From Octopus bimaculoides (lineage: Eukaryota), in assembly GCF_001194135.2 (NCBI RefSeq), contig NC_068987.1, forward strand, positions 24,236,581 to 24,300,580: a DNA stretch of 64,000 nt. Direction: 5' to 3'. The notes below the pieces were generated by a model. That model saw only the letters and a list, made by a program, of their open reading frames with translations, did not search any database and had not been told where the DNA came from. Both the position numbers and the translations under genes were made by a program. Below are positions 11,584 through 64,000 of this stretch, piece by piece. How positions within the stretch are numbered: position 1 is the stretch's first letter; the number at the start of each line of letters is the position of its first letter.

Positions 11584-11649
11584 NNNNNNNNNNNNNNNNN
11601 NNNNNNNNNNNNNNNNNNNNNNNNNNNNNNNNNNNNNNNNNNNNNNNNN

Positions 11650-17499: not shown

Positions 17500-18702
17500 A
17501 TGGAAAATGAATTATGTGACAACCAGGATGAATATAAAATACAGTCAAGGACTGATTTTCCTGATAAGACACTGAAACAAATAGAAAAGTCATCAAAACA
17601 CTGTGATGTTTCTAAGCTATTATCTGAAAAAGGTACCTTAACTAAACATAAACCTATTCATGCTGGAGGGAAACCATATCACTGTGATATCTGTGGTAAA
17701 TCATTTTCTCAGAAGGGTTCCTTAACTACACACAACCGTATTCATACAGGAGAGAAGCCATATGACTGTGATATCTGTAGTAAATCATTCTCTACAAAAG
17801 TTCACCTAGCTACTCACATACGCATTCATACAGGAGTGAAACCATATCACTGTGATACCTGTGATAAATCATTCTCTCAAAGCAGTTATTTAACTACTCA
17901 TAAACGTATTCATACAGGAGAGAAGCCATATCACTGTGATATCTGTGGAAAATCATTTTCTCGCAATGGCAAATTATCTACTCACAAACGTATTCATACA
18001 GGAGAGAAGCCATATGACTGTAATATCTGTGGTAAAACATTTTCTAGAAGTGATTATTTAACTACTCATAAACATATTCATACAGGAAAGAAGCCTTATG
18101 ACTGCGATGGCTGTGATAAATCATTCTTTCGATATAGTGAATTGACTACTCACAAACGTATTCATACAGGAGAGAAGCCATATCACTGTGATATCTGTGG
18201 TAAATCATTCTCTCGAAGTGATCACTTAACTACTCACAAACATATTCATACAAGAGAGAGGCCATATCATTGTGATATCTGTGGTAAATCATTCTCTGTA
18301 GATAGTCACTTAACTACTCACAAACGCATTCATGCAGGGGAGAAGCCATATCAATGTGACATCTGTGGTAAATCTTTCTCTCAAACAAATATCTTAACAA
18401 CTCACAAACGTATTCATACAGGAGAGAAGCCATATCTCTGTGATGTATGTGGCAAATCATTCTCTGTACCATGTAGTTTAACTAAACACAAACGTATCCA
18501 TACAGGAGAGAGACCATATCACTGCAGTATCTGTGGTAAATCATTCTCCATAGATAGTCACTTGACAACTCACAAACGCATTCATACTGGAGAGAAACCA
18601 TATCACTGTGATATCTGTGGTAAATCATTCTCTCGAAGTAGCTATTTGAATACTCACAAGCGTGTTCATACAGAAAAGAAGCCAGATGACTCTGATATAT
18701 AA
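17500..18702 (+). CDS. C2H2 zinc-finger protein, 400 aa; 12 intact fingers plus one degenerate N-terminal finger
   Basis: ATG-initiated ORF with tandem [11 protein letters not shown]...H-x3-H TGEKP units. Confidence 0.95.
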
Positions 18703-30826: not shown

Positions 30827-31990
30827 TTATGGGCTTTCTCCTGTATGAACACGTATGTGAGAAGACAAATGACCTCTTTTAGAAAATGTTTTACCACAAA
30901 TGTCACAGTGGTATGGGCTTTCTTCTAAATGAATATGTTTGTGGGAACACAGCTCAACATTTGTAGAAAATGATTCACTACAGATATCACAGTGATATGG
31001 TTTCTCTCCTGCATGAATATGTTTGTGAAAAGACAAATCATCACTTCTAGAAAATGTTTCATCACCAGTATCATACTGGTATGTTTTCTCTCCAGTGTGG
31101 ATACGTTTGTGGGAAGATAAATTACTATTCTGAGAAAAATTTTTACCACAGATGTCACAATGATATGGTTTCCCTCCCGTGTGAACGAGTCTGTGGCAAG
31201 ACAAATCACCATTTCTAGAAAATGTTTTACCACAGATATCACATTTAAATGGTCTTTCTCCAGAGTGAATATGTTTGTGGCGAGTCAATGAACTGTTTCT
31301 AGTGAATCTCTCATCGCAGATATCACAGTGATATGGTTTTTCTCCTGTATGAGTAAGTTTGTGAGAAGACAAATGACTACTAACAGAAAATGTTCTACCA
31401 CAGATATCACAGCGATATGGTCTTTCTCCTGTATGAATACGTATATGACAAGACAAATGACCCCTTGTAGAAAATGTTTTATCACAGATATCACAGCGGA
31501 ATGGGCTTTCTCCTGTGTGAATTCGTTTGTGGGTAAATAAGCTACGATTATCAAAGAATGCTTTACCACAGTCACTACATTGGAAAGGTTTTTCTCCTGT
31601 ATGAATACGTTTGTGAGTAGATAAATTACCTTTCTGAGAGAAGTTTTTACCACATGTGTCACAGTGGTATGGTTTTTCTCCAGTATGAATACGCTTGTGG
31701 GCAGATAAACTGCCACTTGTAGAAAAGTTTTCATCACAGATATCACAGTGGTGTAGTTTTTTCCCTGTATGAATACGTTTATGGCAAGATAACAAATTTC
31801 TTGTAGAAAATATTTTATCACAAATTTTACATTGGTACAGTTTTTTGACAGAGTGGATTAATTTATGCTGAATTAAATTCTTTCTTGTTGTGAATAATTC
31901 CTCACAGATATCACAAGGATGTGATTCCTCTTCTGTATTTTCCTGTGTCTGAGTTGATGAATCAATATTTTCAGACTTTTTCTCATCCAT
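30827..31990 (-). CDS. C2H2 zinc-finger protein, 387 aa; 13 finger units (one has lost both Cys)
   Basis: First ATG at 31990 (MDEKK), homologous to the 47222 start; the ORF track's 32050 start is a TTG. Confidence 0.93.
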   Translation of the reverse strand: MDEKKSENIDSSTQTQENTEEESHPCDICEELFTTRKNLIQHKLIHSVKKLYQCKICDKIFSTRNLLSCHKRIHTGKKLHHCDICDENFSTSGSLSAHKRIHTGEKPYHCDTCGKNFSQKGNLSTHKRIHTGEKPFQCSDCGKAFFDNRSLFTHKRIHTGESPFRCDICDKTFSTRGHLSCHIRIHTGERPYRCDICGRTFSVSSHLSSHKLTHTGEKPYHCDICDERFTRNSSLTRHKHIHSGERPFKCDICGKTFSRNGDLSCHRLVHTGGKPYHCDICGKNFSQNSNLSSHKRIHTGEKTYQYDTGDETFSRSDDLSFHKHIHAGEKPYHCDICSESFSTNVELCSHKHIHLEESPYHCDICGKTFSKRGHLSSHIRVHTGESP

Positions 31991-45835: not shown

Positions 45836-45889
45836 CATAAGGTTAAGACTCCTCACTACTCTGTCATTTCCATTTATCTGAGGCATAAG

Positions 45890-46105
45890 AAAGTAGTATC
45901 CTCACAAACACAGGAAAATATGGAAGAAAAATCACATCCTTGTGATAAATGTGGCAAGTTATACATAACTAGAAAGAATTTAATTCAACATAAATTAAGC
46001 CACTCAGTCTCCAAATTGTACCACTGTGAAGTCTGTGATAAAAGATTTACTAGAAACAGTTTGTTAACATGCCACAAACGTATTCACACAAGAAAGAAAC
46101 TGTCA
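45890..46105 (+). pseudogene. Near-identical copy of the first two fingers of the 47222 gene
   Basis: About 5 substitutions versus ~47227-47440; ORF 45920-46114 MEEKSHPCDKC...HKRIH. Confidence 0.85.
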
Positions 46106-47221: not shown

Positions 47222-48526
47222 ATGAATAAGAAAGTAGTATCCTCACAGACACAGGAAAATATGGAAGAAAAATCACATCCTTGTGATATATGTGGCAAGT
47301 TATACATAACTAGAAAGAATTTAATTCAACATAAATTAAGCCACTCAGTCTCCAAATTGTACCACTGTGAAGTCTGCGATAAAAGATTTACTAGAAACAG
47401 TTTGTTAACACGCCACAAACATATTCACACAGGAGAGAGACCATATCATTGTGATATCTGTGGCGAAAGATTTTCTAGAAGTAGCAATTTGTCTCGACAC
47501 AAACTTATTCATACTGGAGAGAAACTACACCACTGTGATATTTGTGGTAAGACATTCTCTGATAGTGGTATATTGTCTTCCCATAAACGTGTTCATACAG
47601 GAGAGAAACCATATCCCTGTAATATTTGTGGTAAAGCATTCTCTCAGAGTAATGTCCTATCTACCCACAAACGTATCCATACTGGAGAGAAACCATACCT
47701 TTGCAATATTTGTGGTAAAACATTTTCCCAAAGTGGTAGTTTGTCTTCCCACAAACATATTCACACAGGAGAGAAACCCTATCAGTGTAATATTTGTGGT
47801 AAAACATTCTCTAGAAACAGTAACCTATATTCTCACAAACGTAATCACACTGGTGATAACCCATATAAATGTGATGTTTGTGGCAACACATTTTCTCTAA
47901 GTCGTGACTTATCTTCCCACAAACGTATTCACACAGGAGAGAAACCATATCACTGTGATATCTGTGGTAAAACATTCTCTCAAAGTGGTAATTTATCTCA
48001 ACACAAGCATATCCACACAGGAGAGAAACCATACCATTGTAATATTTGTGGTAAAACATTCTCTCAGAAAGGTAATTTATATCAACACAAACTTATCCAC
48101 ACAGGTGAGAAACCATACCACTGTGATATCTGTGGTAAAAGATTCTCTCAGAATGCTATTTTATCTAAACACAAACGTATTCATACAGGTGAGAAACCAT
48201 ATGAGTGTGATGTCTGTAGTAAAGCATTCTCTAACAATAGTAGTGTGTCTCGGCACAAACGTATTCACACAGGAGAGAAACCATTCTACTGTGATATATG
48301 TGGTAAAACTTTCACTCGGAGTGGTAGTTTAGCAACCCATCAATATGTTCACATTGGAGAGAAACCATATCACTGTGATATCTGTGGTCAAACATTTTCT
48401 ACAAATAGAAATATATTAAGTCACAAACGTATCCACACAGGTGAAAAACCATATCACTGCCATATCTGTGGCAAAACATTCTCTAACAGTGGTACTTTAT
48501 CTCGACATAAACATATTCATATGTGA
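47222..48526 (+). CDS. C2H2 zinc-finger protein, 434 aa; 15 fingers
   Basis: ATG-initiated ORF with tandem fingers and TGEKP linkers; N-terminus paralogous to the 30827 gene. Confidence 0.95.
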   Translation: MNKKVVSSQTQENMEEKSHPCDICGKLYITRKNLIQHKLSHSVSKLYHCEVCDKRFTRNSLLTRHKHIHTGERPYHCDICGERFSRSSNLSRHKLIHTGEKLHHCDICGKTFSDSGILSSHKRVHTGEKPYPCNICGKAFSQSNVLSTHKRIHTGEKPYLCNICGKTFSQSGSLSSHKHIHTGEKPYQCNICGKTFSRNSNLYSHKRNHTGDNPYKCDVCGNTFSLSRDLSSHKRIHTGEKPYHCDICGKTFSQSGNLSQHKHIHTGEKPYHCNICGKTFSQKGNLYQHKLIHTGEKPYHCDICGKRFSQNAILSKHKRIHTGEKPYECDVCSKAFSNNSSVSRHKRIHTGEKPFYCDICGKTFTRSGSLATHQYVHIGEKPYHCDICGQTFSTNRNILSHKRIHTGEKPYHCHICGKTFSNSGTLSRHKHIHM

Positions 48527-59629: not shown

Positions 59630-60345
59630 GGGAGACATTCAACATCCAAATACCAATCTCAAAATCCTAGCTATCCCCAACAGAGCAGTTTTGGGGGCTT
59701 GCTCTGCTCTCGTGTCAATTCTGATTTCTTTGACATATTTCTCGAACTTGGTTGTTAATGCTCTGAAATGACAGACACTCTCCTCATAATCCACATTCTT
59801 GCAATTTCATCTTTTAGTAGTCTGTACTTTTCAATCTTTCTACTTATTTATCACTTATGCGTGAATTTCCAGGTATTGCAATATCTATGATCTTGGTTTC
59901 CCTTTTTCTTTTATCTACAATATTTGTTCTCCAATCCTTGATCAGGGAGTCACATTGGTTTGTATAATCCCACAGTATCTTATGTTCCTTGTTCTCGGTG
60001 ACTCTTGGTTCATGTTTGTACCATTTCCGTGCTCCGTTCAGGCTGTACCTCTCACATGACTTCCAGTGGATGAACTTAGCCATGTTATTGTGCCACCTTT
60101 TGTAGTGCTTTTGGGCCAGCTTGCTACACTCACTCACAATATGTGAGATTGTTTTGTTTCTGCTGCCACACCTCCTACAAAGGGACAATTTGCTACTCTT
60201 ATCTATTCGGGACTTGATGTAATTAGTGCATCCTTTTCGATCACTTTTTCTTAGCCATCTCTAAGTGTTGATCTTACCTTTCTCTGAGGTGTTGCCCATG
60301 CATTGGTTTCATTTTCCAGTTGTTTACTCTTTGTTCTTCATTTTG
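59630..60345 (-). mobile_element. R4/Dong-type non-LTR retrotransposon C-terminus (CCHC plus restriction-like endonuclease)
   Basis: MHGQHL; CRRCGSRNKTISHIVSECSKLAQ; KILWD; IIDIAIPG; TALLGIARILR. Confidence 0.8.
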
Positions 60346-61007: not shown

Positions 61008-62930
61008 ATGGAGGAGAGACTGTGTAAGAATCAGGTTTATGAGAATAAGGATTTCCCTCACCCAAATGAGAACGATGTACAGATGAAATCATATGACTGT
61101 GACATCAAAACAAATACATCCATGAATATTACGGAAACCAGTGAACACAATTCACTTAATACAAATTCAAATGTTTACCATTGTGAAGTTTGTGATGAAA
61201 ATTTCACATATGATTCTTTGCTTTCACACAAATGTACTCACACAGATGAGAAACTATGCCATTGTGATATCTGTGGTAAAATTTTCTCTAGTGATGACGA
61301 CTTGACTGTTCACAAATGTACACAGACAAGTAAGAAAACATTTAACTGTGATGTCTGTGGAAAAACATTTTACAAGAATTCTGATTTAACTCGTCACATA
61401 CGCATTCACACAGGTGAAAAACCATTCTGCTGTCATATCTGTGGTAAATCATTTTCTCGGAATTATGAATTGACTGGTCACAAATATACTCACACAGGTG
61501 AGAAACCATACTGCTGTGATATATGTGGTAAAACATTTTCTCAGAAGTTTCAATTGAAACTTCACATACGTACACACACAGGTGAGAAACCATATCACTG
61601 TGATGTGTGTGGTAAAACATTTACTACGAATTCTGATTTAACTCGTCACATACGCACTCACACAGGTGAGAAACCATACCACTGTAATAACTGTGGCAAA
61701 TCATTTTCTCGGAATTATGAACTGACTGCTCACAAATGTTTTCACACAGGTGAGAGACCACATCACTGTGCTGTCTGTGGTAAAACATTTTCAAAGAATT
61801 CTGACTTAACTCGACACATACGTATTCACACAGGTGAAAAACCTTTTCGCTGTGACATCTGTGGTAAATCATTTTCTCGAAATTACGGATTGACCGGTCA
61901 CAAATGTTTTCACACAGGTGACAAATCATATCACTGTAATGTCTGTGGTAAAACATTTTCAAAGAAATCCGACTTAATTCGTCACTTATGTATTCACACA
62001 GGGGAAAAACCATTTCACTGCGATGTTTGTGGTAAAACATTTTCAAAAAATTCTGACTTAACTCGTCACATACGTATTCACACTGGGGAAAAACCATTCC
62101 GCTGTGATATCTGTGGTAAATTATATTCTCGGAATTACGAATTGACTGTTCATAAATATTCTCATACAAATATGAAGCCATATCACTGTGATATATGTGG
62201 TAAAACATTTTCTCAGAAGTTTCAGTTGAAACTTCACATACGTACACACACAGGTGAGAAACCATATCACTGTGATGTCTGTGGAAAAACATTTACTACG
62301 AATTCTGATTTAACTCGTCACATACGCACTCATACAGGTGAGAAACCATTCCACTGTGACATCTGTGACAAATCGTTTTCTCAGAATTATGAGTTGACTG
62401 TTCACAAATGTTTTCACACAGGTGAGAAACCATATCACTGTGATATATGTGGTAAAACATTTTCAAAGAATTCTGACTTAACTCGTCACATACGCATTCA
62501 CACAGGTGAAAAACCATTTCACTGTGGTGTCTGTGGTAAATCTTTTTCTCGGAATTATGAATTGACTGGTCACAAATATACTCACACAGGTGAGAAACCA
62601 TACTGCTGTGATATATGTGGTAAAACATTTTCTCAAAAATATCAATTAAATCTTCACATACGGACTCACACAGGTGAAAAAGAATATCAATGTGATATTT
62701 GTGGTAAAACATTTAGTAGAAATGGGGACTTGACTGTTCATAAATATACTCATACAGGTGAGAAACCATACCACTGTGATATCTGTGGTAAAACATTCTC
62801 ACGGAATTCTCACTTAACTCGTCATATACCTACACACAGAGGTGAGAAACAATACCACTGTGATATCTGCGATGAATCATTTTCTCGGAAAAATGCGTTG
62901 ACTGTTCACAAATCTACTCACACAAGTTAG
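61008..62930 (+). CDS. C2H2 zinc-finger protein, 640 aa; 19 canonical and 2 degenerate fingers, internally repetitive
   Basis: ATG-initiated ORF; repeated helices NSDLTR, RNYELT and QKFQLKL. Confidence 0.96.
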   Translation: MEERLCKNQVYENKDFPHPNENDVQMKSYDCDIKTNTSMNITETSEHNSLNTNSNVYHCEVCDENFTYDSLLSHKCTHTDEKLCHCDICGKIFSSDDDLTVHKCTQTSKKTFNCDVCGKTFYKNSDLTRHIRIHTGEKPFCCHICGKSFSRNYELTGHKYTHTGEKPYCCDICGKTFSQKFQLKLHIRTHTGEKPYHCDVCGKTFTTNSDLTRHIRTHTGEKPYHCNNCGKSFSRNYELTAHKCFHTGERPHHCAVCGKTFSKNSDLTRHIRIHTGEKPFRCDICGKSFSRNYGLTGHKCFHTGDKSYHCNVCGKTFSKKSDLIRHLCIHTGEKPFHCDVCGKTFSKNSDLTRHIRIHTGEKPFRCDICGKLYSRNYELTVHKYSHTNMKPYHCDICGKTFSQKFQLKLHIRTHTGEKPYHCDVCGKTFTTNSDLTRHIRTHTGEKPFHCDICDKSFSQNYELTVHKCFHTGEKPYHCDICGKTFSKNSDLTRHIRIHTGEKPFHCGVCGKSFSRNYELTGHKYTHTGEKPYCCDICGKTFSQKYQLNLHIRTHTGEKEYQCDICGKTFSRNGDLTVHKYTHTGEKPYHCDICGKTFSRNSHLTRHIPTHRGEKQYHCDICDESFSRKNALTVHKSTHTS

Positions 62931-62990
62931 AAACCTTACCACTGTGACGTTTGTGGCAAAACATTTTCACAAAGTTCTCACTTAACTTGT

Positions 62991-63028
<38 letters not shown>

Positions 63029-63038
63029 NNNNNNNNNN

Positions 63039-63078
<40 letters not shown>

Positions 63079-64000
63079 TGACAAACCATAACATTATGGT
63101 ACCTTTGGTAAATCTTTCTTTTGTAATGGTGAGTTGTCTACTCACAAGTTTGCCCACAGTTGAGAAACCATACTAATGTGTTATCTGTAGTAAAGCATTT
63201 ACCAAAACATTTCACTTAACTTGTTACGTATATACACTGGTGAAAAACCATAGCATTGTGATATTGTAATAAAACATTTTCCACAATTCATCAATTGACT
63301 TTTTACAAATGTTCTTACATGAGTGTGAATACTAACTACAGTGGTATCTGTGGTTAAAAATGTTATCAACATAGAGACTTCACTATTCACACGCATACTC
63401 GGGTAGTTGAGAGCATACTACTGATATCTATTGTAAAACATTTTAAGTAAATTCACATTTAGCCCTTCACATACATACTAATGCAGGTGAGAAACCATAC
63501 CACTGTGATATCTGTGGTAAAATATTTTCAAGAATTTCTTAACTTTTTAGAAGCCATACTACTGATCATTATCATTTTTTGCTGCAGACTAACTGGAATG
63601 TTAGGGTCCAAGTCAGTTCTTATTCAATGTGGCTGATTGAAGATTACATCTCATCCTTACTTAATATTTTGACATGGCTTCTACATCAGGATACCCTTCC
63701 TAAATGTAAACCACTTGATAGTGTAATGGTTGCATTTTATGTTAGCACAAGCACTAAGACTATAGAGTGGGTTGATTTCGTGGACCTAGTGGTAGGATGG
63801 ATCAGTCTATTTGCCATGCCCATAGGGGTTGGGTGGTTAATTAGAGTCCAAGACAAATCTTATTAGAGATCTTGAATTAGTTTTTTGCCCTTTACAATCT
63901 TCTCTTAAAAATAAACTGCTGTAACACCCATATGCACACACACACATATTCTTGTATATGTGTAAAGACAATATACATCAAAGAACACAGGAAGAACAAA

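Follow-up and report, generated by a model that had tools for sequence, protein, structure and literature searches.

Octopuses carry a C2H2 expansion of about 1,800 genes. Octopod lineage-specific clusters of C2H2 poly-zinc-finger genes were reportedly described by Albertin et al. in 2015. The octopod C2H2 expansion is also documented in a further study (PMC9795677). Vertebrate ZNF genes often diverge by gain and loss of fingers within their arrays (Nowick et al., 2011, PMC3126818). The arrays of PRDM9 consist of tandem 84-bp units, which are near-identical except for the hypervariable codons −1, 3 and 6, and variation and positive selection are concentrated at these positions (PMC4060951).

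The gene analysed here is located at 61008..62930 on the plus strand of the window, by which we mean the whole 64-kb stretch of Octopus bimaculoides DNA that was analysed. The window has a GC content of 35% and a CpG observed/expected ratio of 0.44, and it contains at least five finger arrays, which are found on both strands. The complete open reading frame codes for 640 amino acids followed by a TAG stop. An exact-sequence look-up showed that the poly-finger product is identical to that of a gene on record for Octopus bimaculoides (CM046607.1 at about 24.2976-24.2996 Mb, in the chromosome-scale assembly GCA_001194135.2). Altogether, the product contains 21 C2H2 fingers in a strict 84-bp register. 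The spacing C-X2-C-X12-H-X3-H recurs every 28 residues and is strict in 19 fingers; finger 1 is intact as well, and finger 2 is a C2H2 finger except that its last His is replaced by Gln (HKCTQ). The linkers following fingers 3 to 18 are TGEKP in 12 of 16 cases and near-canonical in the remaining four (TGERP, TGDKS, TNMKP and TGEKE).

The Pfam models zf-C2H2 (PF00096, 371 bits with a cut-off of 25.2, 19 stretches) and zf-H2C2_2 (PF13465, 480 bits with a cut-off of 40) match the reading frame. Pfam found no KRAB (PF01352), SCAN, BTB or PR/SET domain in the frame, including its 57 amino acid leader, and no real domain besides the C2H2 fingers anywhere in the 640 amino acids. A match to the Pfam MBD family was discarded, since it has 0 stretches and its score is summed noise. 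The gene can thus be classed, by its domain content, as an effector-less classical (Krüppel-type) C2H2 poly-zinc-finger gene, and it is not a KRAB-ZFP. It belongs to an octopod lineage-specific C2H2 cluster, with which it shares the species, the clustering on both strands, the short leader followed by Krüppel-type fingers, the TGEKP linkers and the lack of a KRAB domain.

Fingers 3 to 18 (61347..62690, plus strand) form a higher-order repeat. Types were assigned by the helix, taken as positions −1 to +6, and the fingers follow the order A B C A B A B A A B C A B A B C, exactly as stated in an earlier sequence-only reading of this DNA. The first half of eight fingers (fingers 3 to 10, 61347..62018, plus strand) is A B C A B A B A and the second (fingers 11 to 18, 62019..62690, plus strand) is A B C A B A B C. 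Seven helices are of type A: KNSDLTR in fingers 3, 8, 11 and 16, TNSDLTR in fingers 6 and 14 and KKSDLIR in finger 10. Type B has six members, which are RNYELTG (fingers 4 and 17), RNYELTA (finger 7), RNYELTV (finger 12) and the variants RNYGLTG (finger 9) and QNYELTV (finger 15); type C has three, QKFQLKL in fingers 5 and 13 and QKYQLNL in finger 18. Ten distinct helices are found among the 16 fingers. The helix formulas proposed in that reading are right in their counts of seven, six and three, but only four of the six B helices match literally and finger 10 is a variant of A. The fingers flanking the repeat have unique helices; these are fingers 1 and 2 (61179..61346, plus strand) and fingers 19 to 21 (62691..62927, plus strand; RNGDLTV, RNSHLTR and RKNALTV). 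It had also been noted that the other arrays have mostly unique helices, and in four of them this applies to all 46 of 46 helices (6/6, 12/12, 13/13 and 15/15). These neighbouring octopod genes have no higher-order period, whereas the gene studied here reuses three specificities in blocks.

Comparison of the array with itself revealed two registers of elevated identity. Fingers 3 to 10 and 11 to 18 are 87.1% identical across 672 bp (an offset of eight fingers), and fingers 3 to 5 and 16 to 18 are 90.5% identical across 252 bp (an offset of 1092 bp or 13 fingers). Self-identity reaches 0.871 at the offset of 672 bp and 0.905 at that of 1092 bp, compared with 0.72-0.81 at other multiples of 84 bp; in the four neighbouring arrays it is flat over all unit offsets. 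The fingers still group by type when the helix codons are removed and only the backbones are clustered: backbone-only identity is 0.82-0.94 within types and 0.81 across all pairs, and the within-type backbone distance of 0.150 is smaller than in all 5000 label permutations (mean 0.195). Since the backbones cluster by type, the shared helices were inherited by duplication; convergent helix evolution was rejected for the same reason. The proposal that the expansion occurred inside the gene is thus borne out, by the two block registers and by the fact that the types share the backbone as well as the helix.

The backbones fall into two classes, one consisting of A, C and finger 20 and the other of B and fingers 19 and 21, so that fingers 19 to 21 carry on the alternation as B class, A class and B class. 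These two classes explain the 168-bp period that TRF reports in the array. The nearest-neighbour offsets are mixed (8, 13, 6, 5 and 3 fingers), and therefore several events took place, the order of which is ambiguous. A single clean history with one higher-order unit of eight or five fingers was rejected because of these mixed offsets and the mosaic identity along the alignments.

The copies are not near-identical at the DNA level, as had been claimed: the mean within-type nucleotide identity is 86.5% for A, 82.7% for B and 90.5% for C. Only the finger pairs 5/13 (one mismatch in 84), 6/14 (four) and 4/17 (four) are at least 95% identical. The best-conserved block is made up of fingers 5 and 6 (61515..61682, plus strand), a C finger and an A finger with Thr at −1, which differ from fingers 13 and 14 (62187..62354, plus strand) at five positions in 168 bp. 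The longest exact repeat in the array is a perfect tract of 92 bp, which is found at the junction of fingers 4 and 5 (61452..61543, plus strand) and again at the junction of fingers 17 and 18 (62544..62635, plus strand). It is longer than expected if mismatches were evenly spread (P=0.0002), which points to gene conversion or to a small duplication at a later stage.

With an exact repeat of this length in the array, mis-joins or a collapse are conceivable, and the window contains six N gaps, one of them just 99 bp past the stop. That the repetition is an artefact of short-read assembly is nevertheless hardly credible. All units of the array can be told apart, the copies differ at 1-21 of 84 bases, mostly silently, and the frame is kept, which an assembler cannot invent. 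There is no N inside 61008..62930, and a collapse hides repeats and does not create them.

The divergence between the copies was determined by Nei-Gojobori counts. The two halves of eight fingers have a dS of 0.34 and a dN of 0.10 (omega 0.29 overall), fingers 5 to 8 and 13 to 16 have a dS of 0.20, and fingers 5 and 6 and fingers 13 and 14 have a dS of 0.12 (omega 0.06). The neighbouring genes in the window have a dS of 0.5-1.0 from each other, compared with 0.12-0.34 between the copies, and the internal duplications therefore post-date the origin of the gene. The expansion had been called recent, which does not agree with a dS of 0.34 between the halves and of 0.12 at the best-kept block. Differences between copies are mostly silent, with an omega of 0.2-0.3.

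To see where these differences fall, pN/pS was computed on the seven same-type finger pairs at an offset of eight. At the contact positions −1, 2, 3 and 6 pN/pS is 0.15, with 4 non-synonymous and 8 synonymous differences where 77% non-synonymous are expected (binomial P=0.0018), counts that are small (12 differences) and come from pairs partly defined by the helix, which biases pN downwards. When the non-matching pair of fingers 10 and 18 is included, the helix omega is 0.19. Elsewhere pN/pS is 0.12 in the helix, 0.03 for residues of the zinc sites and the hydrophobic core, and 0.49 for the rest of the backbone; the contact positions are the most conserved non-structural codons. The silent divergence together with the unchanged contact residues argues that selection kept the repeated specificities.

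This pattern bears on the comparison with PRDM9. The array shares with PRDM9 the tandem 84-bp units, the reuse of few finger types and the evidence for unequal exchange or conversion, and it had been described as PRDM9-like and minisatellite-like. However, the low pN/pS at the contact positions compared with the backbone is the opposite of what is found in PRDM9. In the octopus array divergence is seen at silent and backbone sites, whereas the contact codons are conserved, and the reading frame contains neither the PR/SET domain of PRDM9 nor a KRAB domain. On every criterion that was tested, the array departs from PRDM9. We consider it quite improbable that it is a minisatellite of this kind, that is, very recent, changing by fast unequal exchange and length-polymorphic. 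The strict 84-bp register would fit such a minisatellite, and the close similarity of fingers 5/13, 6/14 and 4/17 and the 92-bp perfect tract show that some recent exchange has occurred and could still occur. Within-type identity of just 83-90%, with a dS of 0.12-0.34, and differences that avoid the contact residues, in contrast to PRDM9 (PMC4060951), speak against it.

Fingers 3 to 18 derive from three finger lineages with an underlying period of 168 bp. Unequal crossing-over copied these lineages in frame, as blocks of several fingers, and the registers of eight fingers (fingers 3 to 10 against 11 to 18) and 13 fingers (fingers 3 to 5 against 16 to 18) are its clearest traces. The duplications are younger than the split from the neighbouring genes, yet not recent. 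After copying, many silent differences gathered and the DNA-contact residues stayed unchanged, and the patches of higher identity stem from gene conversion or a smaller duplication at a later time. The in-frame gain of whole 84-bp units inside the array is shared with vertebrate KRAB/Krüppel-type ZNF genes. The octopus gene differs from these in lacking a KRAB or SCAN effector, in the large size of its blocks (3-8 fingers) and in that its duplicated specificities were conserved and not diversified.

Our preferred reading, to which we give about even chances, is that this is an intact, effector-less gene of 21 fingers, which grew by block duplication, kept its specificities and likely has a long periodic target of double-stranded DNA. 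The preserved periodic array of identical specificities together with TGEKP in 12 of 16 linkers makes binding of double-stranded DNA along such a target likely. The target of fingers 3 to 18 is predicted to be a tandem repeat or an element that contains repeats. According to the textbook recognition code, position −1 reads the 3′ base, +3 the middle base and +6 the 5′ base of a triplet. This code predicts GC(G/T) for A, NCG for B and NAA for C, and for fingers 3 to 18 altogether the site 5′ NAA NCG GCG TCA GCT NAA TCG GCG GCG NNG GCG TCG GCT NAA NCG GCG 3′. The textbook code thus predicts a target that is periodic and rich in GC and CpG. Such a CpG-dense site would be rare in the AT-rich, CpG-depleted octopus genome. 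For long natural arrays the simple code is not a reliable guide, and long arrays often employ just a subset of their fingers. The B and C fingers have, in addition, an unusual aromatic residue at +2. A scan of the local 73 kb with a hand-made motif built from the code gave a best match of 21 out of 41 specified bases, which is the same as in shuffled sequences.

The scan result would also fit an array without a periodic target. The block copies might simply have been retained, with a subset of the fingers reading an ordinary site, RNA or protein; the extra copies would persist as tolerated, in-frame folded fingers in which helix changes are mildly deleterious. This explanation is possible but seems rather doubtful to us. 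It agrees with the fact that arrays commonly gain and lose fingers where no repeat target is known (PMC3126818), that no repeat in the local 73 kb matches the predicted site and that helices have drifted in finger 9 (Glu to Gly), finger 15 (Arg to Gln) and finger 10. It does not readily account for the difference between the contact positions and the non-structural backbone (pN/pS 0.15 and 0.49), which applies to all same-type copies. Constraint across all of these copies would be unexpected if most of them were passengers.

Fingers of Zif268/EGR1 read GCG, and Arg/Glu fingers of ZFP57, KLF4 and Kaiso tolerate methyl-CpG. B fingers with Arg at −1 and Glu at +3 resemble fingers 1 and 3 of Zif268, and in this respect the analogy drawn in the sequence-only reading is fair. 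It does not extend to position +2, where Zif268 has an Asp that buttresses the Arg at −1 and the B fingers have a Tyr. At +6 the B fingers have Gly, Ala or Val; the A fingers have Asp at +3 and Arg at +6. The combination of Arg at −1 and Glu at +3 is present in four of the six B fingers and is also found in fingers that are not methyl-specific. Octopus methylation is described as sparse, located in gene bodies and absent from transposons (PMC9476566). The idea that the array reads methyl-CpG at transposons is weakened because octopus transposons are reported there as unmethylated, and this weakening covers transposon targets alone.

In a more specific form of the periodic-target reading, the protein would be dedicated to reading a tandem repeat that is rich in GC and CpG and lies in an otherwise AT-rich genome; this repeat could be a satellite or be made up of the repeats inside a mobile element. 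Finger blocks of 2, 5 and 8, which correspond to 6, 15 and 24 bp, would mirror the periodicity of the DNA, and selection would hold the repeated specificities in place. We regard this form as unlikely.

The leader of 57 amino acids (61008..61178, plus strand) contains no recognisable domain and matches no Pfam family. A comparison of N-termini showed that it includes the residues SYDCDI where the octopus paralogues P0124 and P0181 begin their first finger, and from this position it looks like a decayed finger. The TAG stop (62928..62930, plus strand) stands in place of the Glu codon (GAG) of the linker TGEKP, and unit 21 reads ...HTS*KPYH at this point. The stop is followed by a decayed tail of about seven former finger units (62931..63545, plus strand), which is broken by a (TA)n microsatellite at 62994..63076 with a 10-N assembly gap inside it (63029..63038). 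Judged from this arrangement, the stop truncates a finger array that was once longer.

Database searches were carried out with different forms of the protein. A full-length query and a query with the N-terminal 218 amino acids returned only generic ZNF proteins with at most 54% identity among the matches listed, all of which were shorter than about 1.75 times the query length, as if a length filter applied. For a helix-only query the generic C..CGK and linker residues were masked with X; the best match was a pipefish protein with 216 bits, where several hundred bits are expected for a true orthologue, and the matches from O. bimaculoides and O. vulgaris were unrelated to the array. An exhaustive HMMER search of 1.84 billion cluster representatives gave a maximum identity of 54% and no relative with this set of fingers, and the exact protein is absent from a collection of about 15 billion proteins. 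As far as these comparisons go, no relative with this array is detectable among annotated octopus proteins. The lack of an orthologue in these searches, the lack of an effector domain and the stop that truncates a longer array were counted against the preferred reading.

Taken further, such observations might mean that the gene, dead or dying, is a remnant without expression in a cluster with fast turnover, and that its frame is still open by chance. The replaced linker codon with the decayed units behind it, the missing zinc ligand in finger 2, the leader that resembles a decayed finger and the lack of an effector domain are in line with this, as are the protein missing from the large collection and the orthologue that was not found. 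A frame of 640 codons that is open despite 35% GC and an omega of 0.2-0.3 since the duplications argue against it, as they reflect past constraint; such constraint is compatible with function having been lost only very recently. Altogether, we assign this explanation little probability.

The growth process that this gene displays is already described for vertebrate ZNF genes, and what is mildly unusual here is that the blocks are so large and that the specificities they duplicated have been conserved. The array is a clean counter-example to calling every repetitive finger array PRDM9-like, since its repetition accompanies conserved specificity and not turnover. Most octopus C2H2 arrays give no handle on their targets, whereas the strongly periodic layout of this one, maintained by selection, does: it yields the concrete and falsifiable prediction of a long, periodic and CpG-containing site. 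This makes the array a convenient first candidate of the octopus C2H2 expansion for binding assays. Should it indeed be a dedicated reader of a tandem repeat, the cephalopod C2H2 expansion would have its first proposed pairing of a protein with a repeat, and the gene would be a natural example of an array whose architecture predicts that of its target.

The open reading frame of the 21-finger array (61008..62930, +) is followed, 3′ of its TAG stop, by about seven decayed finger units (62931..63545, +); the array formerly comprised about 28 fingers. This tail is split by a (TA)n microsatellite at 62994..63076, which itself contains a gap of 10 Ns. Altogether, six N runs of 10 to 957 bases are present in the window (at 11584, 23686, 35857, 56865, 58351 and 63029), several of which adjoin TA/AT microsatellites. 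The window is part of a gap-rich scaffolded assembly, and therefore the copy number of any repeat in it merits long-read confirmation.

The product of 61008..62927 (+) scored 35 bits against the Pfam methyl-CpG binding domain (MBD), above the cut-off, at residues 313-332, with no stretch passing individually. An MBD domain was rejected, since the score is noise summed over the repeated fingers; the match thus lends no support to methyl-CpG binding.

The array in the window closest to the PRDM9 mode, in which the finger scaffold is conserved and specificity varies, is the 12-finger array at 17683..18669 (+). Its backbone is homogenised and its helix codons are diversified (between-unit nucleotide identity 86% versus 58%), and all 12 fingers have distinct helices. 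The arrays at 30845..31915 (-) and 47282..48520 (+) are inverted paralogues: the first finger is the same in both, and across 13 units they align best at offset 0, with 73% nucleotide identity and a dS of 0.76. An orphan copy of fingers 1-2 (TRKNLIQ, RNSLLT[C/R]) of the latter array is located at 45885..46097, 1.3 kb upstream of its parent. This 213-bp duplicate (45885..46097 versus 47226..47438, +) is 96.7% identical and is far younger than any copy within the 21-finger array.

A 114-aa ORF at 59844..60188 (-) carries a CxxC...HxxxxC knuckle (MSLCRRCGSRNKTISHIVSEC...) and is similar to the C-terminal end of the ORF2 proteins of non-LTR retrotransposons; no Pfam match was found for it at E<=0.01.

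A search for relatives with the full-length 21-finger protein as query identified protein P0043 of the octopod Argonauta hians, whose long N-terminal region is followed by an array in which two finger types alternate (AQR[Y/H]YLQIH / xRKD[S/T]LQIH). Among cephalopods, periodic finger arrays are thus not confined to the Octopus bimaculoides gene.
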